A stretch of DNA of 64,000 nt from Mantamonas sphyraenae STR306 (GCA_026936335.1 JAPMXV010000025.1:124001-188000), one strand, 5' to 3'. Counted from the first letter of the stretch, positions 6,401 to 25,393 are shown. Numbers and translations: made by a program. Notes: generated by a model from the sequence alone, not told the origin.

Positions 6401-7993
6401 TAAGCAGCGTCATCTGAGATAATTCCTCCGCCTTGGTCACACCACCTGTACTGCCAGCACAAGATTGCGCTAAACGGTCGGGTCCGCGGCAGACCTGCCC
6501 AGGTGTAGTGGAATGTCGCCTCCAAGCGGATTCCAAGTTGGCATAGGGCGGAAAAGTTGAGCAGAACCAGTTTCTCCGGTGTGTTGCTGTACACAATGCC
6601 CAGACCCGTGACCGACGACCCCGGCACAAGGTTCTTGACGGACGGGTTCGCAGGGGTTGCCGAATTGGGATTCGTCCATGCAGAGTAGAGAAGCGATATA
6701 GACTCACTTGCGGTGACGATGTACCCTTCAACTTTGATTGTGAAGATGACGTTGTCGAGATGTTGCAAGCTCGTCCAGATCTGGTACGTGCACGTGCTAG
6801 CCGCATTCCAACGGGTATCGGAGGTGATGGAGAAGATCCCAGCGTTTGGGATGTGCATGCGGGGCTTGGTAATCGATGGTGGATCCCAAATGTACCGAGC
6901 TGCGGGGGGGGGGGGGGGGGTGGGGGTGGGTGAGAGAGTGAGTACGTACGCTTCCTGCGACCTACTGCATGACTATCGTACCTTGTTGTCGCATCTCGTG
7001 GTTCATATCAGATACACTGGGTGCCCAAAGTGGTTGTTGGTCCTCTATACGGCTGACATACGGAATGGCGAGGTAAATGTCAAACACGCCTGCTGCGTCA
7101 CCTTCCACCGCAAACTGCAGGGTTAAGCAGTCATGTTGGTCCTTGGGGCGTTCCCCTTGTGTCAAATGCTCGTTTGAAATGATTGTGTCGACGTAGCACC
7201 AGTCATCTGGGCATGGCGTCGAATTCGTGGCGGGCAGCCCGCTCAGTGGTCCCAGGCGCATGCCTCCACGTCCACGAACCTCTTTCACATAGTACGACAC
7301 TTTAAATCGCTTGTCCACCTCAATGGTGACTCCCGAAATCTGAACCCACTGTGTGGCGTTCTCCTTCAGTGCTTGTGCAGCCGCTGTGTACGACCCCGAA
7401 ATCTTGAGCAGATGGCCATACCGAGGAGGGTCGCCGTCCCTCAGTCCCCGTTGATTCATCCTAGGGCCTTTGTTGTATGCTCCAAACCACACGGGGCTGC
7501 TCTCTGTCGCCAGGTTGCACTGTGCACGTGGAATGGACCCTGCGGGGGAAGTGGCAGCCCATGGTCCCTCGAAACAGTGGGTGTATGGGTGCACAGGCGT
7601 AATAGAAATGGTACCAGGATTCAACGATGCTGTTCCTGGTGAACGGTAGTCACACTGAAAGTCTGTAGCTCCGGTCGATGGGCTGCGGTGAAACCACCCA
7701 GTGGAAAACCCCTCGGGCGTGGACTTTCTGGGATGGATGTCGCTCATGAGTGTATTGTGCAGGAGGTTGGGCGGCAGTGCGCCCACAGCCGCCTGCTCCT
7801 GGACCTGACGTCCTTGTGGCGCTTGTGGGAAGCGGAGAGTGCCCACGGATGCCTCCTGCGCAGACATCACGCCGTCATGGTGGATTGCTCCCTCTGCATC
7901 CATGTACACGCTCTGTGCACAGGCAATGCACACAGTCAACGCCATGGCTACGTACCACAGGCCCATGGAACACGGCACCGACATCGACGACAT
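6400..7993 (-). CDS. Secreted protein of unknown function (signal peptide, Cys-containing possibly carbohydrate-binding domain, C-terminal IF.I.VEGY domain); exons 6982-7993 and 6400-6899
   Basis: MSSMSVPCSMGLWYVAMALTVCIACAQS is signal-like. A phase-1 intron at 6900-6981 (CAAG|GTACGA ... C-run CGCAG|CT) joins ORF 6962-8470 in frame to ORF 6400-6858 (QQ-A-RYIWDPP..MHIP). The start could alternatively be at 7966. Confidence 0.75.
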
Positions 7994-9209
7994 GGTGTGC
8001 CGTTTTCGTCTCGTCTTGTGTTGGGCCACCCCCCTCACGCCCTTCAGGGGAACACCCCTCCAAAGAGAGAATGCGTGGTGGGTGTAGTTTGTTGCCATCA
8101 TAGAGCACTGTGCCCATGATTCCCGGTTCCTGTGGTTGCAGCGCCCCTGATTGGCCTGCAAGCTCTGTGGCGCGGGTTGCCCCTTCGGCCGGCCGACCCA
8201 TAGGCAGAGGGAATCACACATCGCCCATTGGTACGCGTGTGTGCACAGTTGAGACGTCAGTGTTTGCCTGTGCGCGATGAAGAAAGTCTCAGGAAAGCCG
8301 TGGCGATTCCAAAGTGCGCGGGAGGACCTTCCTGCGAGTCCTGCTCGCACCTGCACCCTGCGAGACCCCTGTGCACACACCGTGGAATCCATGGGGCACT
8401 GTGCGGAGTATGCCGGTTGCGCATGTGTGTTGAACAATGCGAACAAATGCTGCGATGGACAACACAACACGTGTCACGACGTGCGCGTGGAGAGGCAAAA
8501 AGGTGTTGTTTTTTCGCCCGTCGCCAGAGGCTCGTTTCCAAGCTCGCAGAGACATCAGCAGGGACGACACACGCAAGAGATCAACACAAGAAACAAAGGA
8601 GTGGAGTAAAACGTGAGTGAGAGGCCAGATGTGCGTGATCCAAGTCGACAGTGGATGTCTCTGACTCAATAGCCGGGCGCGCAGGAATACGGCGAGACAA
8701 CTTTTTGGACGTGCAACGATGGAAAGACTCGCAAACCGACACAGGGGATGCATCGAAGCAGGTGAGTGGACATGTGCGGTGGGAGGAGGGTGCGATCCAA
8801 TGGGTGAAAAGAGAGATGAAATCGGGTCGTGGTGTGCGGGGCACTGTGGTGTGGTACGGCCGGGATTGTGGCCAGAGTGCGGGCGGTTGCTGGATGCAAG
8901 CGAAGGCCCGATCAGCTGCCTTTCGGGAACCTGGGAACGCCTTGCGTGGGGAAAGCGTTCATCCAACGATGGAAACAATGGGAAGGAATCTCAGCACGGG
9001 CAGTTCTGCTGTTTCTGGATGGGAGGAGGAGGGTTGTTGCTGACACGGGGCTGATTCGCAGGGTGGGTGGCAGGCTACAGAGGCAGTGTAGGCAAGGGTG
9101 GGACAAACGGGCAGACGCACACGGGTCGGATGAGGATGGTTGTCATTGTCGTGCTCATGCTCGTGGCGTGCCAAGTGCCCGGGGCCGACGGGGCCTGGAC
9201 ATGGCAAGA
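6676..9209. repeat. Outer inverted repeat, left arm (~2.5 kb)
   Basis: Reverse complement of 22618-25146; the ORF track is mirrored (9067/22760, 8470/23357). I saw only a few substitutions, a 1-nt indel and a difference in G/C-run length. Confidence 0.97.
7994..9129. promoter_or_regulatory. Probable bidirectional promoter and 5'UTRs between head-to-head genes
   Basis: Lies between the starts at 7993 (-) and 9130 (+) and is duplicated at 22698-23833. The call is positional; I identified no motif. Confidence 0.5.
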
Positions 9210-12200
9210 AACCAGTCGAGGTCTCTACGGGGCGGAGCTGGATGCTGTGGGGGTTTCTGTCTCCCCCAACGGTGACATTTACACGACAGGGAGAGTAAGT
9301 TTTTCATTGGACGGCTCCAGTCTCGCTGGACTCAGTGGTGACTTTTACGCGACAAAGTGGTCTCCCAACGGCACCAGGATTTGGACACGTGTGTGGGGAA
9401 CCTCCGTTACTGAGTATGGGGCAGATATAGCAGCCACCCCCGATGGGGGGGCGGCAGTTCTTGGCAGAACCTGGGGAGGGTTGTACGGTGCTGCGAATGC
9501 TGGAATGGTGCTCATCAAGGTGGATTCGGAAGGAAGTGAGCAGTGGGCGTCTCCTATCGGCGATGTTTCGATGGCTACCGGTGGAGTAGCATCTCTCTCA
9601 GACGGTTCTATGGTGGTCGTAGGATCTGCTGGAGGGTCAACTCTTGGTCAGCCATTCGCTGGAGGATCGCGTGACATTCTTGTCGGGAAATGGTTTCCGA
9701 ACGGAACAATGGCTTGGGCGAGGATGTTTGGATCCACTGCAGCTGACGATGTGCATGGAGTGGTCGTATCCTCGGGCGGCGAGGTATTTGTTTCGGGTGA
9801 CACAGAGGGGGCGCTGCCAGGCCAAACGCTGCAAGGAGGCTCAGACATTTTTTTGACCAAGCTGAGTGCAAACGGGACCGTTGAATGGATTCGCCAAATG
9901 GGTGGAAGTGGGAATGATGCCGGGTATGCCGTCGCAGCAACAAGCGACGGAGGAGTGCTCCAAACCGCGTCCACCTCGCAAGCTCTATTCGGTCCCAGTG
10001 CATATGGTGGAGATGATGCGGTTTTGGTGAAATGGGCCTCTAATGGCACCATAGAGTGGTCTCACCAATGGGGAGGCTCGGCTGCGGACTTAGCACGTGG
10101 CGTAGTTGTGCAAGCCAATTCGACAATCTTCGTCGGAGGCATCACCTACAGCCAGTCTATCGACGGGGCTTCCTTACAAGGAAGTGCTCCCGATGTGTTT
10201 ATCAGCAAGTTCACGTCGGATGGTCGCTTAAACGGAACCTTCAGGCTGGATTCCCATTCAACCTTCAACTCCATGGCGGTTCTTGATACCAACCTAACCG
10301 TCGTGGGCTTCACTACGGCGAGACCATTTCTACGCGTGATAGATTCCCCTCCCCGCGCTGGCTTTCTTGTGAACGTGTCCCCCAACGGAACCATCGCATG
10401 GGAGCGCCTGCACCAAAGTCCAACGTGGACCCCTAGCGCATGCACGGACTCTCTGGTCATGGACAACGGTGACGTTATCGCGACAGGATACGCACAAGGA
10501 TCGATGGACAATGCCATTGCGGTTGACATGCCGCAGACTTGGTCGGCCAGCTATTCGGAGGGGTATGCCACGAGCACCTGGTCTCTTCCCGGGCTTGTGG
10601 ATCAAGACCTGAGGGGACTAGCTTCAGCAGTTACTTCCAGCGGAGGTGTGATCACTTTGGGACTGCGAGGGTACCGTGTGGGCTTCGTTGACGTAAGCGA
10701 GAAGCAATTGTACACGGTGATCCGCCTGGCGAACGGCACTGTCCTCGATCCCCTCTCCCTGGAAGAATGGAGCGGCACAGCATATGTGAACGCTGGCAGT
10801 GTATCCTCTTTAGGGGTAGTCGCTGTGGTTGGATACACGAGTTCAACTGTGGATGGGCAGTCCGCACCCGGGGTTTCCATGTTTGCGGCAGCGTGGGCAG
10901 CAAACGGCACCAAGATTTGGTCATCCGTTTGGGGTTCAACCCAATTTGATTACGCATACGGAGTCGTGGTGGGTGCAGATGGAGAGGTGTTTGTGGTTGG
11001 CCGATCAACGGGCTCTGTGGACGGAAATCCCTCACTCGGGGCCGGTGATGCAATTCTAAGCAAGTTTTCATCGACAGGAGCTCGATTGTGGACTTCTCAG
11101 TGGGGTACGGCACAGGAGGAGCGTGCATATGGAGTTGCACTTGGTCGCAATGGAACCATTCTGGTTTGTGGCGGGACCGCAGGAGCGATGGCGGGTGCGA
11201 ACGCAGGTGGAGACGATGTCTTTTTGAGCTCATTCTTCCCCAACGGCACCTTGGCTTGGACACTGCAATGGGGAACCTCCTCCACTGACTACGGTCACGA
11301 TATTGCAGTTGGGAGCACGGGACTTGTGCTGGTGGCCGGCCGTACACGAGGAAACATGCAGACGGGAGCCTCGACCGCGAATGAGGACGTCTTTCTTTCA
11401 GCAGCTTCAGGCAATGGCACTCTTTTGTGGACGAGACAATGGGGAACGCAACAACACGATATCGGGTACAGCGTGGCCGTGAACGCACGTGGTCGAGTTT
11501 CTGTGTGTGGAATTTCATCTGGCGCTTTCAATTCGACCCGATACTTCGATCGTGAGCAAACTGCATTTGTATCTGCTGTGGAAACCATGTGTGCCCCTGG
11601 TGGAATCGTGTTGCAGCAGCCTACGACTCTTGCTGACGCGGAGTGTACTTCGTGCCCCATTGGGACATACAACCCTTCGTATGCGTCCGAGGAGTGCCTC
11701 CCATGTCCCACGGGAACGTACAGTGGAGTGGTGGGCGCATCGACCTGCACTGCCTGCTCAGCAGGCAAGTTCGCCAACACGACTGGCAGCGAACAGTGCA
11801 CCACGTGCCCGGCTGGCCTTTACAGTGCAGAAGCTTCGCCGGTATGTGACCAATGCGGTATTGGCACATATGGCAACGACACGATGTGCACACCGTGCCC
11901 CGAGAACACGTTCAACAACCAGACGGGGCAAACTCACTCGTCCGCATGCCTGCCTTGTCCAAATGGCACGAGGAGCTCATCTGGACAGGGTAGCTGCATA
12001 TCGTGCCCTCCTGCCTATGAATATGGAAACGGAAGCTGCGTGGCCTGCCCAGCGCACGCAGTTCACCCGTCGACCTTGTGTTTCACGTGTACAGGTTTAC
12101 CAACACGGTGCATCCAGGTTTCACTGAGAGAAAATCAGTATGAGTGGTGTTCTATCCACAGTCCTATCGTTGTCGAAACAAATAGCACAGAGTGGGCGTC

Positions 12201-15200
12201 AAGCATTCGCGTGCAACTCGGAGATGCTCCGGCCGACAGCCAATCCACATCGAGCGGCTCCCTGCATGTCACGTCGGCGCTTCCCATGGGTACATACCCG
12301 TTGTTCGTGACGCTTGGAGAAGCGAGCATCACATTGACGCAGACACTGCGTGTTGCAAGCCCCGTGCTGCCACTGCTGGTCGCACCGAAAGATCTGACCG
12401 CCAGCCTACAGATCATCAACTGCACGGGTGCCAACACAACCAAGTTGAGAGTGCGGTGTGGTCAGACTGTCCTTCCCGTGTACGCCACGGGATCGGGCCT
12501 CGTGGCAGATTTTCCACCCATGGACACATGTGCGTACACGTGGAGCGATGACGGTGGACAAACGTTTCGCGGCTCTGGACAGGTCATTCGGACCCAAGCA
12601 CCGATTGTGGAGAGCGTGTGGCCCTCGTCGGCACCGCTGGAACTGTTGGACTCCATGTTGCTTCGCGGACGCTTTGACTCTGTCGCTTCAGAGGAACTGA
12701 GAGTTCAATTCAACACAAGCACTTGGACATCTGCTCTGCAACCTGCTGTTCTCATCGCGAACGACAGCCTGAAGGTGACGGTTCCAAAGGGGTTTCCATT
12801 TCAGCCTCCTGTGCAGACGCTGTCCGTCTCGGTACAGCTGGTTGCCCCCTATGTCCAGGCCACTGGTGCATCCATCACCGTGTACAACGCCTCGGTTGAC
12901 AGCGTGTTCCCACAGCAATCACCTGAGCGCACTTCCCGACAGGTGACGATTGCTGGAACCGGCTTCCTGAACGTGACGACGGCACGTGTGTCCTTTCTCG
13001 CTGGCCAGAGTGATTGTACATTCCTTTCGGATACTTTGATGGTGGTCACCACGCCATCCATGCCTGCCTCTGTTGTCCCGGTGTCCTTGAGTCTCAACGG
13101 CGTGCAGTACGAACAATCGGCAAGCCTGTTCCACTTTGTTAGACCTGTGGTGGCGTCGACCTCCCCGAAGGAGCTCCCGTCGGGACGTGTGGTGCAGTTG
13201 GTTGTGTCTGGGTCTGGCTTCATCCAGGACGGTGAATTGCAGGTGCGCATCGGTGGCACACTGGTGCCCAGCTCCCGTGGCAACGACACTTGGGTCAACG
13301 TCACCACACCCGCTCTCGCCGTCGGGTCCTACGACGTGTCGGTCAGCAACAATGGTGGCATCACATCGTACTCCTTGCTGGGCTCTTCTCTCACCGTGTA
13401 CCCCCCGTCCACGTTTACGGCACGCACACCTGGCGGCGTCAGCGGTGCTGGAGGCACACCCATGCGATTGGATGGATTCATTCCCACAGTGCAGGACACG
13501 CCAAGTGTGGCATTGGACGACGGGCTGGGTTGGCGCAGTGTGTCTGTTGTGGCCACGCGCTCTGGCACAGATCGCATCGAGTTTGTGGCGCCTGCGTACA
13601 CGGGAGGTCAGTCATTGCCGCTGCAAGCACGGGTGTTGTTTGCCAACAACGGACAGGACTACGCAGACACCGGGTTGACGGTGACTGTGTTTGGAGGGAT
13701 GGCAGTGACACAGCTGGTGCCAGACAACAAGGCGGCGGGAGTGAGCACAAACATCACTGTGGTGGGCAGCGGGTTTGCAGACACGGGGAGCGTGGTGGTG
13801 GTGGTGGGAGACACACGGTATGCAGGGACGTACGTGTCGGACACACAGGTGGAGTTTACATCGCCTGCGAACCAGGCAGCCGGAGTGTACAGCCCGATTG
13901 GGGTGTCACTGGACGGGGGCGTGACGGTGGTGCCAAGCACGGTGGCAAGTGTGTCACTGACGGTGACACCGCGCACCATCAGCTGTCCGGAAAACAGCGA
14001 GCCAGGATCGGCAGCAGCAAGCACGGGCGACTGCGTGTGCAAACAACGATACTACACTCCCACAGGCAAGAGTGGGGTCAAGTGTGAACCGTGTCCGGCC
14101 AATGCAGAGTGTGCAGGCGGGCTTGCTGCACCCGTGGCGAACCCAGGCTTCTACAGCACGGGAGTGGGGTTCAACTATCAGTTTACACGATGTGCAGTGT
14201 CGACAGCGTGTCTGGGAGGAGGTGACGGGACACTGTGTTCGGCTGGGTACGAAGGGCTGATGTGCGGTCAGTGTTCGGTGGGGTACTACCGGCTGGGAGA
14301 CACGTGTCAGCCATGCACAGAAGAGCAAGGGGGCACGCTGGTGCTGTTCTTTGCGCTGTTTGTGGCGTATCTGTGGTTTGTGAAGCGACAGGTACGCAAG
14401 ACAAGCCGAGGGGTAGTGACACTCGCAATCACTCATCTGCAGGTGATGGCCACGTTTGCAGAGTTCCGCCTGAGCTGGCCGCGGGACGTGCGGCGTGTGT
14501 TGAACGTGTTTTCGCTGACCAATGTGAACGTGGACACGGTGGCACCGGAGTGCACGCTGACGAGCACGTGGACGTACGAAGACCGGTTCTGGATGACGAT
14601 GCTTGTGCCTGTGGTGCTTGTGGCGGGTCTGTTGCTGCGTGTGCTGGTGCAATTCTTGCACCATCAGTTTGTGGTGCGGTACCGGACGGACATGAGTGCT
14701 CGGTTCCCGTCACTGGTTGGGTTTCCGGACGCATCGCGCAGCAAGATTGTGTACTTGGTGTCACTGGCGCGGTACAAGTTGTTCAGCAGCTTGCTGGTAG
14801 AGAGCGAGGCGGTGGATTCGGACACGTGGAGGCACCTTGTGAACGAGACGCTGTTCTCGCTTGGCCTGTTGTACATTCCGATGTCGTCGCGAGTGCTGGA
14901 GATGTTTGACTGCACCACACTGGCCAATGGCAAGGTGGTGCTGGACGCACTGCCGACGGAGGAGTGTTGGGGTGGGCCTGAGACGATGCACGCACGCATG
15001 GTGCCGGCGGGACTTGCGTTTGTGGCGCTGTATGTGGTGGGGGTGCCGCTGGTGTTCTTTGCCATCATGATGACGGCGCAGGATGTGGAGAAGCGACACG
15101 AGGATCGGTTTGAGCAGCGGTTCTCGTCGATCTACAACAAGTACGACGAGCGGTACTACTGGTTCGAGGCACTTGTGCTGCTGCGCAAGTTGGGAGTGGT

Positions 15201-16086
15201 GACGGTGAAGATCTTTGCGACGACTCTGCCGGCGGTGCAGGGAGTGGCGGGGATGATTGTTTTGGGGGGAGCGACGCTGGTGCAGTTTGCGAAACGGCCG
15301 TACAAGACGAGGGCGCAGAACACACTGGAGAGCACGATGTTTGTGCAGTCGCTGCTGCTGCTGGCCTTGGGCATGCTGTTTTACACCGGATCGCTCGGGA
15401 ACGACCTGCTAGTTGCCGTATGGGATGCCTTTGCCACCACAACTGCCGTTTCGGTGGTCGTGGTTGCCTTTGTGTTTCTCTGTGTTGAAGTGTACTTCTC
15501 TGCGATGGATAGAAGGATTGCACTGCTCAAGAATGATGCAAGCAAGGAGATGCTGGAAAGGTGGACGCATGAGTATCGAAAGGTTGTGCAGCCCGACTTT
15601 TACGCAAGCATGGACAAGGTTGCATTGCGTAGCCTCTCTGAAGACGAACTGCGCCTTCTGCTTCGTGCAGTGGACAAGGTGAACACCAGCATGGACGATC
15701 CGGTCACGATGCAAACTATTGCTTTCCACGAGGCGTGTGAACGCGTGATCAAACCCGCGCGAACCGTGGAGGTGCTTTCAAAGCTACTTGACGTGAGCAG
15801 TGATACCACGCAACGCAGATCGCTGCGAGACATCATTGTAAAGATCTCTGTGGGGGCTCGGCGCAAAAAGACCCACTCATCGAACATCAGCATGGACTTG
15901 GTGGACGCAAGAGAGCGGCAATCGCAACGGCTTTCCAAGGCCATCCCGAACGAAGATATTGAACTTCAAACACTGGCCTCACGGAGGGGGTCCGCTTTGA
16001 GTGGCATGGAACGAAGGGGCTCCGAATTGAGTGCGTTTCGAGCACGCAGGCTTGCGGAACAAAAATCCGCGGACGCGGAGGTGTGA
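9130..16086 (+). CDS. Receptor A: signal peptide, about two SBBP-type beta-propellers, Cys-rich repeats, several IPT/TIG domains, ~9-TM TRP/Flc-Pkd2-like domain, cytoplasmic tail
   Basis: Continuous ORF. ATG 9130 gives the signal MRMVVIVVLMLVACQVPGADG. Contains repeated W.RQWGT..D.AY.VA..G.V.V.G.T.G..G..D.FL.K blades, CxxCPxGTY repeats, IPT motifs and the YYWFEALVLLRKL and KRPYK motifs. Confidence 0.92.
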   Translation: MRMVVIVVLMLVACQVPGADGAWTWQETSRGLYGAELDAVGVSVSPNGDIYTTGRVSFSLDGSSLAGLSGDFYATKWSPNGTRIWTRVWGTSVTEYGADIAATPDGGAAVLGRTWGGLYGAANAGMVLIKVDSEGSEQWASPIGDVSMATGGVASLSDGSMVVVGSAGGSTLGQPFAGGSRDILVGKWFPNGTMAWARMFGSTAADDVHGVVVSSGGEVFVSGDTEGALPGQTLQGGSDIFLTKLSANGTVEWIRQMGGSGNDAGYAVAATSDGGVLQTASTSQALFGPSAYGGDDAVLVKWASNGTIEWSHQWGGSAADLARGVVVQANSTIFVGGITYSQSIDGASLQGSAPDVFISKFTSDGRLNGTFRLDSHSTFNSMAVLDTNLTVVGFTTARPFLRVIDSPPRAGFLVNVSPNGTIAWERLHQSPTWTPSACTDSLVMDNGDVIATGYAQGSMDNAIAVDMPQTWSASYSEGYATSTWSLPGLVDQDLRGLASAVTSSGGVITLGLRGYRVGFVDVSEKQLYTVIRLANGTVLDPLSLEEWSGTAYVNAGSVSSLGVVAVVGYTSSTVDGQSAPGVSMFAAAWAANGTKIWSSVWGSTQFDYAYGVVVGADGEVFVVGRSTGSVDGNPSLGAGDAILSKFSSTGARLWTSQWGTAQEERAYGVALGRNGTILVCGGTAGAMAGANAGGDDVFLSSFFPNGTLAWTLQWGTSSTDYGHDIAVGSTGLVLVAGRTRGNMQTGASTANEDVFLSAASGNGTLLWTRQWGTQQHDIGYSVAVNARGRVSVCGISSGAFNSTRYFDREQTAFVSAVETMCAPGGIVLQQPTTLADAECTSCPIGTYNPSYASEECLPCPTGTYSGVVGASTCTACSAGKFANTTGSEQCTTCPAGLYSAEASPVCDQCGIGTYGNDTMCTPCPENTFNNQTGQTHSSACLPCPNGTRSSSGQGSCISCPPAYEYGNGSCVACPAHAVHPSTLCFTCTGLPTRCIQVSLRENQYEWCSIHSPIVVETNSTEWASSIRVQLGDAPADSQSTSSGSLHVTSALPMGTYPLFVTLGEASITLTQTLRVASPVLPLLVAPKDLTASLQIINCTGANTTKLRVRCGQTVLPVYATGSGLVADFPPMDTCAYTWSDDGGQTFRGSGQVIRTQAPIVESVWPSSAPLELLDSMLLRGRFDSVASEELRVQFNTSTWTSALQPAVLIANDSLKVTVPKGFPFQPPVQTLSVSVQLVAPYVQATGASITVYNASVDSVFPQQSPERTSRQVTIAGTGFLNVTTARVSFLAGQSDCTFLSDTLMVVTTPSMPASVVPVSLSLNGVQYEQSASLFHFVRPVVASTSPKELPSGRVVQLVVSGSGFIQDGELQVRIGGTLVPSSRGNDTWVNVTTPALAVGSYDVSVSNNGGITSYSLLGSSLTVYPPSTFTARTPGGVSGAGGTPMRLDGFIPTVQDTPSVALDDGLGWRSVSVVATRSGTDRIEFVAPAYTGGQSLPLQARVLFANNGQDYADTGLTVTVFGGMAVTQLVPDNKAAGVSTNITVVGSGFADTGSVVVVVGDTRYAGTYVSDTQVEFTSPANQAAGVYSPIGVSLDGGVTVVPSTVASVSLTVTPRTISCPENSEPGSAAASTGDCVCKQRYYTPTGKSGVKCEPCPANAECAGGLAAPVANPGFYSTGVGFNYQFTRCAVSTACLGGGDGTLCSAGYEGLMCGQCSVGYYRLGDTCQPCTEEQGGTLVLFFALFVAYLWFVKRQVRKTSRGVVTLAITHLQVMATFAEFRLSWPRDVRRVLNVFSLTNVNVDTVAPECTLTSTWTYEDRFWMTMLVPVVLVAGLLLRVLVQFLHHQFVVRYRTDMSARFPSLVGFPDASRSKIVYLVSLARYKLFSSLLVESEAVDSDTWRHLVNETLFSLGLLYIPMSSRVLEMFDCTTLANGKVVLDALPTEECWGGPETMHARMVPAGLAFVALYVVGVPLVFFAIMMTAQDVEKRHEDRFEQRFSSIYNKYDERYYWFEALVLLRKLGVVTVKIFATTLPAVQGVAGMIVLGGATLVQFAKRPYKTRAQNTLESTMFVQSLLLLALGMLFYTGSLGNDLLVAVWDAFATTTAVSVVVVAFVFLCVEVYFSAMDRRIALLKNDASKEMLERWTHEYRKVVQPDFYASMDKVALRSLSEDELRLLLRAVDKVNTSMDDPVTMQTIAFHEACERVIKPARTVEVLSKLLDVSSDTTQRRSLRDIIVKISVGARRKKTHSSNISMDLVDARERQSQRLSKAIPNEDIELQTLASRRGSALSGMERRGSELSAFRARRLAEQKSADAEV
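13171..15403. repeat. Inner inverted repeat, left arm (~2.2 kb; IPT domains to TM8)
   Basis: Reverse complement of 16599-18830. Differences seen: about three substitutions and one G-run indel. Confidence 0.97.
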
Positions 16087-16113
16087 ATCCAATGCAGATT
16101 TTCTTTACAGACA

Positions 16114-19100
16114 TCAGGAAACGCGCACATTGGCATGCAACTTCCCACTCTCTTCACCCAGCCGGAGAAGAAACTTGATTGTTGCCTCTTGCACGTCGCT
16201 GGCAAGGCCTTCGTTCAAGCAGAAGGCGAGCCACCTTTTGCTCACCGATGGACCCATCACTCCCATGATGCTTTCGAAAAGAGCCTGAGTGAAAAGAGCA
16301 GAGTCGCTTGTATCTTCTGCACGCAAGGTCTTCACAGCGTGAATCGCTTGCAGCAGGGTTTCCTCATCGGTCGAGTCTGCCACCTGTTGCAAACGCATCA
16401 AGTAGTCTTGCCCAATCACAGGCGACATCTCAGACACAAGGGTGCGGACAACCCCGTGCTGGCGCCCATCGCGCTGGCTTGCCATCCAACTCTCGTTGAA
16501 TTTTGTGGTGAGATCGACAATGGACACGAACACGATGACACCCAGGATGGAGAGCGCCACAGCAAGTGTTGCGATCTCCCACACGGATGCCAGTAGGGCG
16601 TTCCCGAGCGATCCGGTGTAAAACAGCATGCCCAAGGCCAGCAGCAGCAGCGACTGCACAAACATCGTGCTCTCCAGTGTGTTCTGCGCCCTCGTCTTGT
16701 ACGGCCGTTTCGCAAACTGCACCAGCGTCGCTCCCCCAAAACAATCATCCCCGCCACTCCCTGCACCGCCGGCAGAGTCGTCGCAAAGATCTTCACCGTC
16801 ACCACTCCCAACTTGCGCAGCAGCACAAGTGCCTCGAACCAGTAGTACCGCTCGTCGTACTTGTTGTAGATCGACGAGAACCGCTGCTCAAACCGATCCT
16901 CGTGTCGCTTCTCCACATCCTGCGCCGTCATCATGATGGCAAAGAACACCAGCGGCACCCCCACCACATACAGCGCCACAAACGCAAGTCCCGCCGGCAC
17001 CATGCGTGCGTGCATCGTCTCAGGCCCACCCCAACACTCCTCCGTCGGCAGTGCGTCCAGCACCACCTTGCCATTGGCCAGTGTGGTGCAGTCAAACATC
17101 TCCAGCACTCGCGACGACATCGGAATGTACAACAGGCCAAGCGAGAACAGCGTCTCGTTCACAAGGTGCCTCCACGTGTCCGAATCCACCGCCTCGCTCT
17201 CTACCAGCAAGCTGCTGAACAACTTGTACCGCGCCAGTGACACCAAGTACACAATCTTGCTGCGCGATGCGTCCGGAAACCCAACCAGTGACGGGAACCG
17301 AGCACTCATGTCCGTCCGGTACCGCACCACAAACTGATGGTGCAAGAATTGCACCAGCACACGCAGCAACAGACCCGCCACAAGCACCACAGGCACAAGC
17401 ATCGTCATCCAGAACCGGTCTTCGTACGTCCACGTGCTCGTCAGCGTGCACTCCGGTGCCACCGTGTCCACGTTCACATTGGTCAGCGAAAACACGTTCA
17501 ACACACGCCGCACGTCCCGCGGCCAGCTCAGGCGGAACTCTGCAAACGTGGCCATCACCTGCAGATGAGTGATTGCGAGTGTCACTACCCCTCGGCTTGT
17601 CTTGCGTACCTGTCGCTTCACAAACCACAGATACGCCACAAACAGCGCAAAGAACAGCACCAGCGTGCCCCCTTGCTCTTCTGTGCATGGCTGACACGTG
17701 TCTCCCAGCCGGTAGTACCCCACCGAACACTGACCGCACATCAGCCCTTCGTACCCAGCCGAACACAGTGTCCCGTCACCTCCTCCCAGACACGCTGTCG
17801 ACACTGCACATCGTGTAAACTGATAGTTGAACCCCACTCCCGTGCTGTAGAAGCCTGGGTTCGCCACGGGTGCAGCAAGCCCGCCTGCACACTCTGCATT
17901 GGCCGGACACGGTTCACACTTGACCCCACCCTTGCCTGTGGGAGTGTAGTATCGTTGTTTGCACACGCAGTCGCCCGTGCTTGCTGCTGCCGATCCTGGC
18001 TCGCTGTTTTCCGGACAGCTGATGGTGCGCGGTGTCACCGTCAGTGACACACTTGCCACCGTGCTTGGCACCACCGTCACGCCCCCGTCCAGTGACACCC
18101 CAATCGGGCTGTACACTCCGGCTGCCTGGTTCGCAGGCGATGTAAACTCCACCTGTGTGTCCGACACGTACGTCCCTGCATACCGTGTGTCTCCCACCAC
18201 CACCACCACGCTCCCCGTGTCTGCAAACCCGCTGCCCACCACAGTGATGTTTGTGCTCACTCCCGCCGCCTTGTTGTCTGGCACCAGCTGTGTCACTGCC
18301 ATCCCTCCAAACACAGTCACCGTCAACCCGGTGTCTGCGTAGTCCTGTCCGTTGTTGGCAAACAACACCCGTGCTTGCAGCGGCAATGACTGACCTCCCG
18401 TGTACGCAGGCGCCACAAACTCGATGCGATCTGTGCCAGAGCGCGTGGCCACAACAGACCCACTGCGCCAACCCAGCCCGTCGTCCAATGCCACACTTGG
18501 CGTGTCCTGCACTGTGGGAATGAATCCATCCAATCGCATGGGTGTGCCTCCAGCACCGCTGACGCCGCCAGGTGTGCGTGCCGTAAACGTGGACGGGGGG
18601 TACACGGTGAGAGAAGAGCCCAGCAAGGAGTACGATGTGATGCCACCATTGTTGCTGACCGACACGTCGTAGGACCCGACGGCGAGAGCGGGTGTGGTGA
18701 CGTTGACCCAAGTGTCGTTGCCACGGGAGCTGGGCACCAGTGTGCCACCGATGCGCACCTGCAATTCACCGTCCTGGATGAAGCCAGACCCAGACACAAC
18801 CAACTGCACCACACGTCCTGACGGGAGCTCTCTCGGAAACAAGCTGTGCGCACGTGCCACGACGGAGCCCACTGCTTGTGGCGCGTTGACAAAGGTCACT
18901 CCATCAAATGATACGCTGATGGGAACCACGGGGTGTTGCAGCGACGGGGCTTGCAGACGAATGGTGCTGCTGGACAACACCCAACTCGGGATCGCCATGC
19001 TACCAAGCATCGCCTGGATACCTCGAGGCGGACCAAAGCCGCTTCCAATGAGCGTTATGTTGCGCGACACTCTCTCGGGCACCATTGTTGGCTGGACGGA

Positions 19101-22100
19101 GTTGATACGTGGCTGCAGGCTCACACGCAGCCACATGCGCCGTCCGACGGTGAAGCGGCGACCGTCCAGTGAGAACGAAACCACATACGCACCCGATGGC
19201 AAGGACGGCAGCGTGCAAGTTGCTCTTGTGTCACTCTGCACCGTGGCGTTGACAAGCTCCTTGCCAACCATACAAACCGCACTCTTGCCATCGATTGCGA
19301 CAAACCCCGTCCCGTGGATGGTGATGGTCACACCTGCTGAACCGTTAACAACATTGGGCTCGATGGCCACTGCGTCGTACGTTGTCCATGAAAACTCTGC
19401 CGTGCAGCTGGTGTTGAACACTGGAATGGACACGGTCGTGACGTTGGTTGGCACTCGGAAGCGCCACCACGATCCGTCAAACCTGAGCCCGCTTTGCTGG
19501 GCCTTGACGTCAAACGCCTGAGGGGGCGCCGTCTTGTTGAACCGGTATGTGGCAACCACACCGTCCAAGCCAGCTGGGATGGGCACTTGTCCCACGTCCC
19601 ACTCCACCCGTGGACACTCAACGCATACCGTCGTGTTTCCAATGACATTGGAGACGCCATACAGACAATTTGAGCATGACGTTTGGCCCGGAATGCTCTG
19701 TTGACCTGCGGGACACGGTTGGCAACTGTCGGCAGACGTCTGATTGGCCAGAGTGCCAAATGTGTTGGCTGGGCACAGAACGCACTGTTCGGGAGCAGTT
19801 GCATTCCCGTATGTTCCGGCTGGACATGGAGTGCACGTAGACGCACCGGCAAACGCATAGCTTCCGAGTTGGCAAGGTGAGCACGCAGTGGCTCCAGGGT
19901 TTGCGCTGTACGATCTGGCCGAACACTGCGTGCAGCTTGACGCTTGTGTTGCGTTGGAAAAGTAGCCCTTGGGGCAAATATCACACGTGGTGGACCCTTG
20001 GTGGCTAAACTGCCCTTCTGCACACGGAGAACATCCGAGGGAACCCGTGCTGTTCGAGAACGAACCTGCGGTGCAGTTTAGACAGGCTGAAGCACGCGAC
20101 ACGTTGCTGTGCTTGCCCATTGGACACAGTGTGCATGAACCAGCGTATTCGGCGTTGTACTCCCCAGGAGCACATGCAGCACACTCCACATCTGCAAATC
20201 CGCTGGGTGTTGAGGTCAACGTCGTCCCCGGACCGCATTTGGTTTCAAACGAAGACACAAAGGCCGTGCGTGAGCTTGTAAAGGACACATTGGCATTGAG
20301 CGATCCTTTGCTGTATCCACAAACAGCGACTCGGCCGCTGTACGCGACCGCTCCACCGTACGCATACTCGTCTGCGGATGAACCCCACTGTTTCGTCCAA
20401 ACCTTGACTCCGCTGGTGGTCCAGCGTGTAGCAAAGATGTCTGTGCCTCCAAAGGACGGGTTTCCATCCAAGGAACCGCCAGTGGTGCCGCCTGCAACCA
20501 CCGTATCGTTGTAAACAGCAACGAAGCTGCTCACATCGTTGAACCCGGTCCCCCATTGACGGTGCCACATGCGCACGCCGCTGCTCGACCAGGAAACGAG
20601 GAAAGCATCGTCGCCACCACTGCTGCTTTGCCCCCCGCCGCTGGATGCGGCCGCGAGGCCGGCGACGAAAACCGTTTCATCCGGAAGATGCGCAACAGAG
20701 AACGCGTAGTCCCATGAGTTCGATCCAAACTGTCTGCTCCACACTTTGACACCTTCGTGTGTCCACTTGGTGACAAACAGGTCGCTGTTACCCAGGAAGC
20801 TCTGACCATCCAAGGAAGCGTGCGTGTGTCCGACAACCCAGATAGCAGTATCGGATGCTGCTACAGACGTCCCTGCGTCCTCTGTGTTGGTCCCCCACAC
20901 TCGTGTCCACTGCTTGGTTCCGTTTCCTGACCACTTGGTCAGAAAAATGTCTCGGTCTGCGATGCCAGCCTGCCCATCCAATCCTCCCTGGACGTACCCG
21001 GTGACAAGAAGGTCTCCAGAGCCACTGACAACGCCGCCAACCACAGTCGGTGTGCCGCCCCCGATCCAAGCATCGAGAGTGGTAATGGCGACCGCGGTCC
21101 CGTTGCTCAGTCTCAACGTTGTGTACATGGGACCAGCCCCAACTCCAGCGTACAGCCCTGTGCGGGCAAACGAAGCGCACCCAAGGAGTCGAGTTGCACC
21201 CGAGGCCAACTGCTGCGCCGAAATCCAGGTGATCCCCTTGGAGGCCTGTTGCGACAACATCCAGGCACGGCTGCCAGAGGTCGGAGTCAGAGCTCCAACC
21301 CACGGAAAGGTACCCACAGTGTCGGCGTCGGTCCATACCATGGCACCCGTCCCGTCTCCTGCTACCAATGGATAGTCTGCGTCAGCAAAGGAAACAGAGT
21401 AAGCGGTGTTGTTCGACTGCTGGCTTGCACGCAGCAGACGCTCCTGTGACAAGGTACCCGAGCTAGAGTACGTATTCAAAGTGACGTCTTCACCTGTCTC
21501 TGCGTACGTGGTGTAACCAATCACAATTCCGTTGTCGCCCTGGCATGCAACATCAACGGCATTGCTCTCTGCCCCAGCTGCTCCCCAAAGTCGCGTCCAT
21601 GTTCGCGTCCCGTTTGCAGTTATCTGAATGACCATTTGATCTCTCGCACCAGTTCTCGGTTGCGAGTTTACACTTGAGCTCCATGTCTGCCCCACAGCCA
21701 GCCAGTTGCCATCGCCACACTGGCTGATACCAGTCCCGTAGTCGTTGCTACTGCCTCCCCACTGGCCACCCCACTCCATTGTTCCATTCAGATCAATACT
21801 GAACACAAACATATCGAAACCGCCGGACCCAGCACCAACAAGCGAGCCTGAGGTAGCTCCGATTGCCAGCACGTGCTCACCTGTGATGTCGATCTGTATG
21901 TCCTGGATCCAATCACCACTTGCACTTCCCCACTGTCTTCTCCACCGCTCCGTTCCATTTGGAAGGAATTGGAGGATGAAGGCGTCTTCCAATCCGGCGT
22001 GACTCTGACCGAGCGAACCCCAAGTGTGTCCACCCACGAATATGTGCCCCATAGGTGACACCGTCAACGAACTTGCTTGATCGGTACCGGAAGTTCCCCA

Positions 22101-22697
22101 TTGGCGGATCCATGCCACAGTCAAATTGGTGTGCACCTTCACCAGAACCGCATCTTGTGCTCCGAACGAGCTTTGTCCAAACGTACCAGCTGTGTTTCCA
22201 CAGACCACAATCGATCCATCAGGAAGACTTGACACCGAATAGAAAACGTCCGAGGCTGCTGTGCCAAGTTGTACCCCGTCATCCAAGCTGCCATTCTGGT
22301 GAACCCGTGCGATGAATCCATCGTAGCCTCCAAAATGAGTGCCAAACAGGGAACCCGATGCGTGTCCAGCGACCAAAATCTTCCCCTGAGAATCTAAAGC
22401 AACGCCATAAGCGGCATCGTCGCCCGAAGTTCCCCACATGCGGGTCCACAGGCGAGAACCATTCACGGCCCATTTCGTCACAAAGGCGTCTCCTTGCCCA
22501 TAGTTGATTTCTCCATCCAGGCTACCGTATGTCCTTCCAACAACGTAAGTATCACCTCCTGGTGACACGACGACTCCATAACCCCTTTCGGACTGGGCGG
22601 TGGCGCTCAAGGTCGGCTCTTGCCATGTCCAGGCCCCGTCGGCTCCGGGCACTTGGCACGCCACGAGCATGAGCACGACAATGACAACCATCTTCAT
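16114..22697 (-). CDS. Receptor B, paralogue of receptor A; apparent 1-nt frameshift at 16733-16737 (homopolymer, possibly a sequencing error)
   Basis: ORF 16416-22760 and ORF 16114-16722 join into one protein if C5 at 16733-16737 is really C6, as in the G6 at 15264-15269. Same architecture as A, with a diverged ectodomain and tail. Confidence 0.85.
16599..18830. repeat. Inner inverted repeat, right arm
   Basis: Mirrored ORFs (13290/18711, 14235/17766); the protein is near-identical from ELPSGRVVQ to FYTGSLGN. Confidence 0.97.
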
Positions 22698-25146
22698 CCG
22701 ACCCGTGTGCGTCTGCCCGTTTGTCCCACCCTTGCCTACACTGCCTCTGTAGCCTGCCACCCACCCTGCGAATCAGCCCCGTGTCAGCAACAACCCTCCT
22801 CCTCCCATCCAGAAACAGCAGAACTGCCCGTGCTGAGATTCCTTCCCATTGTTTCCATCGTTGGATGAACGCTTTCCCCACGCAAGGCGTTCCCAGGTTC
22901 CCGAAAGGCAGCTGATCGGGCCTTCGCTTGCATCCAGCAACCGCCCGCACTCTGGCCACAATCCCGGCCGTACCACACCACAGTGCCCCGCACACCACGA
23001 CCCGATTTCATCTCTCTTTTCACCCATTGGATCGCACCCTCCTCCCACCACACATGTCCACTCACCTGCTTCGATGCATCCCCTGTGTCGGTTTGCGAGT
23101 CTTTCCATCGTTGCACGTCCAAAAAGTTGTCTCGCCGTATTCCTGCGCGCCCGGCTATTGAGTCAGAGACATCCACTGTCGACTTGGATCACGCACATCT
23201 GGCCTCTCACTCACGTTTTACTCCACTCCTTTGTTTCTTGTGTTGATCTCTTGCGTGTGTCGTCCCTGCTGATGTCTCTGCGAGCTTGGAAACGAGCCTC
23301 TGGCGACGGGCGAAAAAACAACACCTTTTTGCCTCTCCACGCGCACGTCGTGACACGTGTTGTGTTGTCCATCGCAGCATTTGTTCGCATTGTTCAACAC
23401 ACATGCGCAACCGGCATACTCCGCACAGTGCCCCATGGATTCCACGGTGTGTGCACAGGGGTCTCGCAGGGTGCAGGTGCGAGCAGGACTCGCAGGAAGG
23501 TCCTCCCGCGCACTTTGGAATCGCCACGGCTTTCCTGAGACTTTCTTCATCGCGCACAGGCAAACACTGACGTCTCAACTGTGCACACACGCGTACCAAT
23601 GGGCGATGTGTGATTCCCTCTGCCTATGGGTCGGCCGGCCGAAGGGGCAACCCGCGCCACAGAGCTTGCAGGCCAATCAGGGGCGCTGCAACCACAGGAA
23701 CCGGGAATCATGGGCACAGTGCTCTATGATGGCAACAAACTACACCCACCACGCATTCTCTCTTTGGAGGGGTGTTCCCCTGAAGGGCGTGAGGGGGGTG
23801 GCCCAACACAAGACGAGACGAAAACGGCACACCATGTCGTCGATGTCGGTGCCGTGTTCCATGGGCCTGTGGTACGTAGCCATGGCGTTGACTGTGTGCA
23901 TTGCCTGTGCACAGAGCGTGTACATGGATGCAGAGGGAGCAATCCACCATGACGGCGTGATGTCTGCGCAGGAGGCATCCGTGGGCACTCTCCGCTTCCC
24001 ACAAGCGCCACAAGGACGTCAGGTCCAGGAGCAGGCGGCTGTGGGCGCACTGCCGCCCAACCTCCTGCACAATACACTCATGAGCGACATCCATCCCAGA
24101 AAGTCCACGCCCGAGGGGTTTTCCACTGGGTGGTTTCACCGCAGCCCATCGACCGGAGCTACAGACTTTCAGTGTGACTACCGTTCACCAGGAACAGCAT
24201 CGTTGAATCCTGGTACCATTTCTATTACGCCTGTGCACCCATACACCCACTGTTTCGAGGGACCATGGGCTGCCACTTCCCCCGCAGGGTCCATTCCACG
24301 TGCACAGTGCAACCTGGCGACAGAGAGCAGCCCCGTGTGGTTTGGAGCGTACAACAAAGGCCCTAGGATGAATCAACGGGGACTGAGGGACGGCGACCCT
24401 CCTCGGTATGGCCATCTGCTCAAGATTTCGGGGTCGTACACACCGGCTGCACAAGCACTGAAGGAGAACGCCACACAGTGGGTTCAGATCTCGGGAGTCA
24501 CCATTGAGGTGGACAAGCGATTTAAAGTGTCGTACTATGTGAAAGAGGTTCGTGGACGTGGAGGCATGCGCTGGGACCACTGAGCGGGCTGCCCGCCACG
24601 AATTCGACGCCATGCCCAGATGACTGGTGCTACGTCGACACAATCATTTCAAACGAGCATTTGACACAAGGGGAACGCCCCAAGGACCAACATGACTGCT
24701 TAACCCTGCAGTTTGCGGTGGAAGGTGACGCAGCAGGCGTGTTTGACATTTACCTCGCCATTCCGTATGTCAGCCGTATAGAGGACCAACAACCACTTTG
24801 GGCACCCAGTGTATCTGATATGAACCACGAGATGCGACAACAAGGTACGATAGTCATGCAGTAGGTCGCAGGAAGCGTACGTACTCACTCTCTCACCCAC
24901 CCCCCCCCCCCCCCCCCCGCAGCTCGGTACATTTGGGATCCACCATCGATTACCAAGCCCCGCATGCACATCCCAAACGCTGGGATCTTCTCCATCACCT
25001 CCGATACCCGTTGGAATGCGGCTAGCACGTGCACGTACCAGATCTGGACGAGCTTGCAACATCTCGACAACGTCATCTTCACAATCAAAGTTGAAGGGTA
25101 CATCGTCACCGCAAGTGAGTCTATATCGCTTCTCTACTCTGCATGG
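22618..25146. repeat. Outer inverted repeat, right arm
   Basis: Matches 6676-9209; identity ends after CTCTGCATGG at 25146. Confidence 0.97.
23834..25146 (+). pseudogene. 3'-truncated copy of the secreted-protein gene (intron 24845-24922; CC>C frameshift near 24571)
   Basis: Near-identical to 7993-6676 but lacks the last ~90 codons, which are replaced by G-rich kinase upstream sequence. One C is missing relative to GG at 7255-7256. Confidence 0.75.
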
Positions 25147-25393
25147 TCGAATTCCCGGTGTGAGGTGGGTGGGGGTGAATATGTGGTTTGCGAGAGATGT
25201 GGATGCGGGAAGTGGACCACCGGAACTTGGAAAGGTTTGTTTGGGGTGTGGAAACGGTGGTGGTGGTGACGATGGATGGGTGGGGTGGAGTGAGGTGGGG
25301 AAGGGCGGGGAAGGGTGGGGAAAGGGAAAGAGGAAAAGATGGGGGGACATCGGAGCGGGAGCTGACAAGTGGGGCAGAACTGGTTGATCGATC

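Follow-up and report, generated by a model that had tools for sequence, protein, structure and literature searches.

The stretch analyzed here, a window of 64,000 nucleotides (nt) from Mantamonas sphyraenae STR306 (GCA_026936335.1, JAPMXV010000025.1:124001-188000; contig 25 below, with positions counted from the window's first letter), contains an 18.5-kb imperfect palindrome of two convergent, anciently duplicated genes for putative receptors in the nuclear genome. The FALCON assembly of this species is diploid and comprises 25.06 Mb in 78 primary contigs, with a guanine-plus-cytosine (GC) content of 59% and mostly mono-exonic genes (PMC10492846). Receptor gene A occupies 9130-16086 on the plus strand, in a frame that is open from 9067, with its first Met at 9130 and its stop codon at 16084-16086. 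Receptor gene B runs toward it on the minus strand at 16114-22697, in a frame that is open from 22760, with a Met at 22697; the TGA that closes its homologous frame lies at 16114-16116. The convergent stop codons are thus separated by 27 nt (16087-16113), so that each 3' untranslated region must run antisense through the tail-coding region of the other gene.

The order of domains in receptor A is a signal peptide, SBBP-type beta-propeller repeats, ephrin-receptor-like Cys repeats, IPT/TIG domains, a DUF7630-like region, a multi-pass TRP-like module, and a C-terminal tail, here called tail alpha. Pfam searches of the receptors recovered the SBBP beta-propeller, Cys repeats of the ephrin-receptor-like, NCD3G and TNFR-like kinds, and several IPT/TIG domains, with TIG scores of 87.8 and 95 bits (gathering cutoff, 20.9) and Ephrin_rec_like scores of 43.2 and 40.9 bits (gathering cutoff, 23.1). 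Matches to TRP (PF06011; 23.3 bits) and DUF7630 (24.7-24.9 bits) fell below their cutoffs of 28.5 and 27. The language-model neighbors of the C-terminal 650 amino acids (aa) of the receptors are protist proteins with the same families (DUF7630, TRP), at scores of 0.92-0.94. A PDB sequence search with the membrane module gave no match, and AlphaFold2, run on an alignment of this module from seven paralogs, returned a poor model, with a mean predicted local distance difference test (pLDDT) score of 54.5. A search for homologous proteins, with residues 1367-2339 of A as the query, yielded no more than four hits, all distant (20-30% identity), and missed the query protein itself. On these domain assignments, A and B would be giant receptor- or channel-like membrane proteins, the modules of which may set ligand specificity and signaling output.

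Repeat search, self-BLAST and base-by-base alignment verified two nested inverted repeats at this locus, close to where a reading made from the sequence alone (hereafter, the sequence-only reading) had placed them. The left outer arm (6667-9209; 2543 nt) is 99.5% identical to the reverse complement of the right outer arm (22618-25155), from which it differs by eight substitutions and two indels (4 nt at 6918-6921 and 1 nt at 7255/24571). Each outer arm holds the 3' flank and full coding region of a neighbor gene, a divergent intergenic (promoter) region of ~740 nt, and the start of a receptor gene as far as the motif AWTWQE; genome-wide, there are two copies only. The 4-nt indel reads GGGT and falls in the 3' flank of the left copy of the neighbor gene. 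The inner arms, at 13165-15425 on the plus strand for A and 16577-18836 on the minus strand for B, are the constant block of the two receptors, with three IPT/TIG domains, the DUF7630-like region, and every transmembrane (TM) helix except the last. Up to 15403, they differ at positions 13169, 13170, 13182, 13541 and 14071 and by a single 1-nt indel in a G run, which is G6 in A (15264-15269) and G5 in B (16733-16737). Past 15403, there are seven mismatches in 15404-15420, after which the arms are unalignable.

Between the outer and inner arms lie the variable ectodomains. That of A (9210-13164, plus strand) comprises the propeller, the Cys repeats and a membrane-proximal module of type X1, and that of B (18837-22617, minus strand) includes a membrane-proximal module of type X2. 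No DNA match between the two is found by blastn; their proteins are ~33% identical, and their third-codon positions agree at a random level. The center of the palindrome is a diverged spacer of 1151 nt (15426-16576), which carries the last TM helix and tail alpha of A (the latter ending at 16086), the 27 intergenic nt, and, on the minus strand, B's last TM helix with tail beta (16114-16598 in full). The first boundary falls directly after the signal peptide motif AWTWQE, the second ~10 residues past the end of the preceding IPT/TIG domain, and the third at GSLGN (aa 2108-2112), in a loop ahead of the last TM helix as predicted by a hydropathy scan and by low-confidence model helices. The sequence-only reading had divided the locus into four blocks that are, from the outside in, alternately near identical and diverged; this layout holds with essentially the same limits, and the sharp breaks it had seen at domain edges are all there. 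Judging by their length and likeness, repeats of 2.2-2.5 kb at >99% identity cannot reflect chance.

Whether the palindrome exists in the genome can be judged from sequencing depth. The project runs for the species comprise PacBio RSII, Nextera paired-end, Nextera mate-pair and poly-A TruSeq RNA data (PMC10492846). Read data were available as Logan k-mer contigs (k=31 type) from four runs of one study, which were laid on 13001-19000 and which cannot span a 2.2-kb repeat. Run X3 is probably the RNA run, as a TruSeq adapter stands at the end of one of its contigs. Contigs of this run cover both tails. In runs X1 and X2, respectively, the arm contig has depths of 54.1 and 38.7, compared to 28.8 and 22 for the end of ectodomain A, 31.6 and 20.1 for the spacer, and 30.9 and 21.2 for the end of ectodomain B. 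A 4060-nt contig bridges outer arm, ectodomain A and inner arm, a 3886-nt contig does likewise for B, and a 1255-nt contig (15374-16628; runs X1 and X2) reads through tail alpha, the 27 nt and tail beta with zero differences and into the arm at both ends. A single molecule containing each arm twice and the rest once is the only solution of the k-mer graph. With arm depth double that of the unique parts and both tails on one contig, the palindrome is real. For calibration, a 6301-nt contig from a single-copy paralog on contig 3 (~190-196 kb) has depths of 53.6 (X1) and 39.3 (X2), the same as the arms. By this calibration (one contig, two runs), the palindrome's unique modules are at half depth, and so the palindrome appears to be present once per diploid genome, being either hemizygous or paired with a homolog too different to share k-mers.

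Half of the single-copy depth (53.6 and 39.3 for the contig-3 contig) is also what two divergent alleles with common constant parts would give, and the genome was assembled as a diploid with FALCON (PMC10492846). A false palindrome might have arisen from the joining of two haplotypes or from a PacBio fold-back read. We regard such an artifact as extremely unlikely. The Illumina-type contig that leads from tail alpha across the 27 nt into tail beta in reverse complement, with arm at both ends, is identical in two runs, and separate alleles cannot produce it; the false joining of two divergent alleles is thereby ruled out. Furthermore, the arms lie at exactly twice the spacer depth, fold-backs give perfect palindromes without diverged modules, and the layout recurs in a paralogous locus on contig 15.

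The proposal that further ectodomain cassettes might be attached to the same constant block elsewhere found no support, as the constant block of the inner arms has two copies only at high identity genome-wide and none further above 73%. At 73% identity, it recurs in a second convergent receptor pair at contig 15:301800-315250, with gene C15-L on the plus strand and gene C15-R on the minus strand. The inverted repeat of this pair measures 2093 nt at 98.7% identity (27 substitutions and one indel) and encloses a spacer of 1150 nt, with stop codons ~35 nt apart, and the signal peptide of C15-L ends in the same AWTWQE motif. C15-L has two frameshifts, near 304060 and at 306196, and C15-R is intact (2257 aa); at several of the 27 arm differences, the broken gene has A and the intact gene G. 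No outer inverted repeat was found on contig 15, even with 7-nt words. Relative to contig 25, the contig 15 arms begin ~117 nt (~39 codons) further in at the 5' side, where their edge is graded rather than sharp, and end 51-73 nt (17-24 codons) earlier at the 3' side. Contig 15 was also considered as an allelic haplotype of contig 25, which was ruled out: silent sites are saturated and the neighbor-gene family is absent from contig 15.

To compare their histories, the four genes (A, B, C15-L and C15-R; the last two abbreviated L and R) were cut into modules, for which pairwise identities and IQ-TREE quartets (1000 bootstraps) were obtained; pieces split by frameshifts were searched apart, except in the sliding-window alignment, where the two C15-L pieces around the frameshifts were joined with X residues. 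The constant block groups by locus, with 99.8% identity between A and B, 97% between L and R, and 66% between loci, and a quartet of (A,B)|(L,R) at 100%. The propeller groups likewise, at 33% (A-B) and 30% (L-R) compared to 26-29% for other pairs (98.9%). The membrane-proximal X module (aa ~997-1366 of A) instead gives (A,R)|(B,L) at 100%, with 32% identity for both A-R and B-L and 19-22% for the others; for the last TM helix with the tail, the quartet is (A,L)|(B,R) at 99.5%, with 29% for A-L, 26% for B-R, and 16-22% for the others. In windows of 200 columns, grouping by locus extends over aa 49-600; grouping of A with R begins weakly at aa ~600 and reaches 100% from aa 975. Whole-genome HMMER searches, made independently, bear this out: tail alpha is confined to A and C15-L and tail beta to B and C15-R, and module X1 scored best in C15-R (143 bits; next, 47) and module X2 in C15-L (169 bits; next, 57). 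Gene A thus combines X1 with alpha, B X2 with beta, L X2 with alpha, and R X1 with beta, so that all four combinations exist in one genome.

The X and tail quartets conflict, which requires a reciprocal exchange at some point between these two modules, where the constant block lies. We infer at least one historical crossover within the constant block, which would have exchanged X and tail partners. The most economical history would be a single crossover, which in an inverted pair amounts to inversion of the spacer, and the module combinations indirectly suggest that spacer orientation differs between the two paralogous loci. The sequence-only reading had proposed that crossover between the inner arms swaps the tails. 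Its in-frame geometry was confirmed, and the reciprocal combinations at contig 15 argue for at least one such exchange in the past; its comparison to a shufflon fared less well, as set out below.

Silent sites point to very different ages for adjoining modules. For the propeller, X and tail modules, all gene pairs show 20-39% identity at 4-fold sites, where composition predicts 26% at random. In the constant block (compared over 13834-15387), the corresponding values are 56% between loci and 96% for L-R, and A and B differ in this block by three substitutions. The variable modules are saturated and the constant block is not, so that the latter was homogenized later; it groups by locus beside sequence that is old and is far younger than the duplication. 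On this evidence, the convergent layout, the two X types and the two tail types are very old, and the constant block has been homogenized very recently within each pair; it also seems to have been exchanged between the two loci, later than the origin of the variable modules. The patchy concerted evolution that the sequence-only reading had described, sparing the ectodomain and tail modules, agrees with both the module identities and the silent-site saturation.

We therefore consider it probable that the two genes have evolved in concert over a long time through ordinary homologous recombination, with the spacer inverting rarely. Under this hypothesis, repeated intrachromosomal gene conversion by the general recombination machinery of the cell would keep two blocks 99.5-99.9% identical, namely a 5' block (neighbor gene, promoter and signal peptide) and the constant block (three IPTs to the penultimate TM helix). 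Conversion tracts would halt where homology ends, leaving the ectodomain and the last-TM-plus-tail modules to drift or diversify to silent-site saturation. The constant blocks face each other in inverted orientation and share a reading frame, so that recombination resolved, on occasion, as a crossover would flip the 1.15-kb spacer, and A and B would thereby trade their last TM helix and cytosolic tail. Such an exchange has probably occurred one or more times since duplication of the pair gave rise to the second locus.

An alternative hypothesis is that no process continues and no inversion took place. Isolated recent conversions or segmental replacements could account for the identical blocks, and the module combinations could stem from independent assembly of the pairs or from old events akin to exon shuffling in tandem arrays. 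The outer arms look like the product of such a single, fairly recent event, since they are present at this locus only, contig 15 having none and the neighbor-gene family being confined to contig 25. The N-terminal part of the propeller groups by locus and the rest of the ectodomain does not, which shows that the events were several and unrelated. However, the same constant block is homogenized at both loci, within nearly the same limits and around spacers of 1151 and 1150 nt, and it is younger than the neighboring modules both within and between loci. Isolated events would have to strike the same module repeatedly and independently, which is less parsimonious than a recurrent process, and we consider this alternative unlikely.

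Bacterial shufflons and the invertase switches of tail-fiber or hsdS genes (e.g., Rci/sfx of plasmid R64, or Gin, Cin, Pin and Hin) encode their recombinase next door, use short crossover sites, and switch at high frequency in clonal populations. Like them, inversion at the Mantamonas locus would swap alternative C-terminal segments behind a constant N-terminal part. Unlike them, the host is a eukaryote, and neither a neighboring recombinase nor short sites were found. The sequence-only reading had noted no recombinase in the window, and in agreement, Pfam detected no recombinase, integrase or transposase domain in the receptors, the neighbor gene or the flanking large open reading frames (ORFs), a scan that covered larger ORFs only. 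No short (~19-26 bp) crossover sites were seen; the arms consist of 2.26 and 2.54 kb of coding homology. Members of the same family arranged as tandem direct pairs are similarly patchy. A pair at contig 31:265900-278000 is 98.2% identical over the 3' 4.7 kb and then 76% in the 5' (N-terminal) part, a pair at contig 55:328700-339250 has two ~99% blocks with a diverged gap between them, and a pair at contig 58:348800-360100 is 94% identical throughout. Given that tandem direct pairs show the same patchwork and that arm limits vary between loci, general homologous recombination suffices. The locus is not a recombinase-driven switch of the shufflon type, and nothing shows a programmed switch; the label "shufflon-like" is not supported.

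A switch that dispenses with a recombinase might still operate here, with the 1.15-kb spacer, and perhaps the entire 13.4-kb segment between the outer arms, inverting often or on cue within a clone, so that one lineage would express all four receptor combinations. The geometry is suitable (in-frame inverted arms of 2.2 kb around a short spacer, with tails of two types), and each of the four ectodomain-tail combinations occurs in the genome. The same architecture at two loci, despite saturated neighbors, suggests maintenance. There is also a eukaryotic precedent without a dedicated recombinase in Ogataea polymorpha (PMC5720833). If this were true, a surface receptor encoded in a eukaryotic nucleus would be subject to the equivalent of a shufflon, independent of a recombinase, and selection for that ability would maintain the palindromic layout at both loci. 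We nonetheless rate frequent inversion as very unlikely. Besides the missing recombinase domain (in the larger ORFs scanned) and short sites, the arm ends are not conserved between loci, and the patchwork recurs in tandem pairs, where inversion is impossible. The 27 substitutions accumulated in the contig 15 arms mean that exchange there is infrequent. The comparable inverted repeat on yeast chromosome XIV is reported to be stable in orientation on laboratory timescales (PMC9731477).

The assembled sequences of several of these genes are disrupted. As assembled, gene B leaves its frame after the C5/G5 run at 16733-16737 and ends at 16416 in Arg-rich sequence; its homologous tail (last TM helix and tail beta) is readable only in another frame, to 16114-16116. 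Multi-mapping short reads cannot polish a PacBio consensus within near-identical repeats. As they lie inside such repeats, the frameshift indels of the arms may be residual assembly errors at unpolished PacBio homopolymers or, in the case of B, a real inactivating mutation. Contigs across the G run have lowered depth, at 46.7 compared to 54-57 in run X1 and 22.4 compared to 38.7 in run X2, which hints that both versions of the run exist in the DNA. A contig of run X3 aligned to the B side carries the extra base, but this does not prove B intact, as the nearest position specific to B is 135 nt away from the G run, farther than a k-mer reaches. Identical arms are precisely where short-read polishing fails, and such frameshifts need a check at read level before any pseudogene call is made.

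Several points weigh against concerted evolution with rare inversion as proposed above. The k-mer graph is symmetric and thus blind to spacer orientation, so that the present orientation rests on the published PacBio assembly. Continuing conversion is a deduction rather than a direct observation, and the same would hold for any recent inversion. The historical inversion is an argument of parsimony from four genes, and two successive nonreciprocal tail replacements or independent assembly of the pairs could give the same combinations. The trees of the variable modules are built on proteins of 26-33% identity with saturated DNA, and propeller repeats can misalign. Gene B, the right copy of the neighbor gene, and C15-L are all frameshifted in the assembly; decay of one member in each pair may therefore be under way, and any functional interpretation would then be weaker. 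Finally, the footprint of GC-biased conversion is inconsistent: GC content at third codon positions is raised to 72-73% (against 54-65%) in the constant block of A and B, but not in that of C15-R.

The closest known parallel is the flip/flop region of Saccharomyces chromosome XIV, where continual homogenization of an inverted repeat of paralogous genes is reported to lead to recurrent reinversion, with both orientations occurring over evolution (Salzberg et al. 2022, PMC9731477). Like the Mantamonas locus, the yeast repeat, as described there, consists of paralogous genes, is homogenized and older than its identity suggests, and has no dedicated recombinase. In the same account, the yeast arms are whole genes around a 24-kb block with 15 other genes, so that inversion alters gene order only, and orientation polymorphism has been shown (PMC9731477). 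In contrast, the arms described here are internal to two convergent coding sequences, so that a flip of 1.15 kb of coding sequence would yield in-frame chimeras, and orientation is known from the assembly alone.

The palindromes of primate X and Y chromosomes are similar in their arm identity of >99%, intrachromosomal conversion over long periods, unique spacer, and layout kept across divergence; their arms are tens to hundreds of kilobases long and uniformly identical (PMC8327919, PMC8981503). In Mantamonas, by contrast, each arm is broken by a saturated module of 3.8-3.9 kb, and the spacer is coding. Human inversions between inverted duplicates share the route of nonallelic homologous recombination, recurrence and concerted evolution, although they belong to another organism and scale and their breakpoints generally do not recombine protein modules in frame (PMC3961182). 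The mating-type flip/flop of O. polymorpha is likewise a nuclear inversion through ~2-kb inverted repeats by homologous recombination, but it is induced and regulated and moves genes into centromeric silencing without remaking a coding sequence (PMC5720833).

Homogenization of and inversion between inverted repeats are well known as sources of structural polymorphism and not well known as a means of recombining protein modules. At the Mantamonas locus, one crossover would exchange the last membrane helix and cytosolic tail between receptors with unrelated ectodomains. With reciprocal products at a second locus, this provides a concrete and testable case, from a deep-branching eukaryote (CRuMs), of ordinary homologous recombination shuffling protein domains. 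The locus also demonstrates that one gene module can remain constant for very long, within and even between loci, while its neighbors saturate.

The neighbor gene encodes a 476-aa product without a Pfam match. Its left copy (6965-8392, minus strand) is an open frame divergent from receptor A, and the frame of its right copy (23435-24861, plus strand) is broken by a 1-nt deletion at 24571, where the left copy has GG and the right G. Paralogs of this gene (35-41% identity) were found only just upstream on the same contig (contig 25). Directly left of and outside the palindrome lies a third, more distant member of the receptor superfamily (605-6400, minus strand; 1931 aa), with TIG, Ephrin_rec_like, DUF7630-like and TRP-like regions, which is adjoined by an ORF at 6400-6858. 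In a further family member of 3234 aa, an 858-nt unit is repeated in approximately four tandem copies at >99% identity (contig 72:104289-107479); every one of these units has its match in the proximal, IPT/TIG-bearing part of receptor A, which suggests a very recent internal expansion. The right flank of the palindrome (25631-51713) is a plus-strand array of four LRR-ankyrin-TKL kinase genes of ~1260-1320 aa, with which three 621-aa open frames on the minus strand alternate; the one scanned has a weak G8-domain match.

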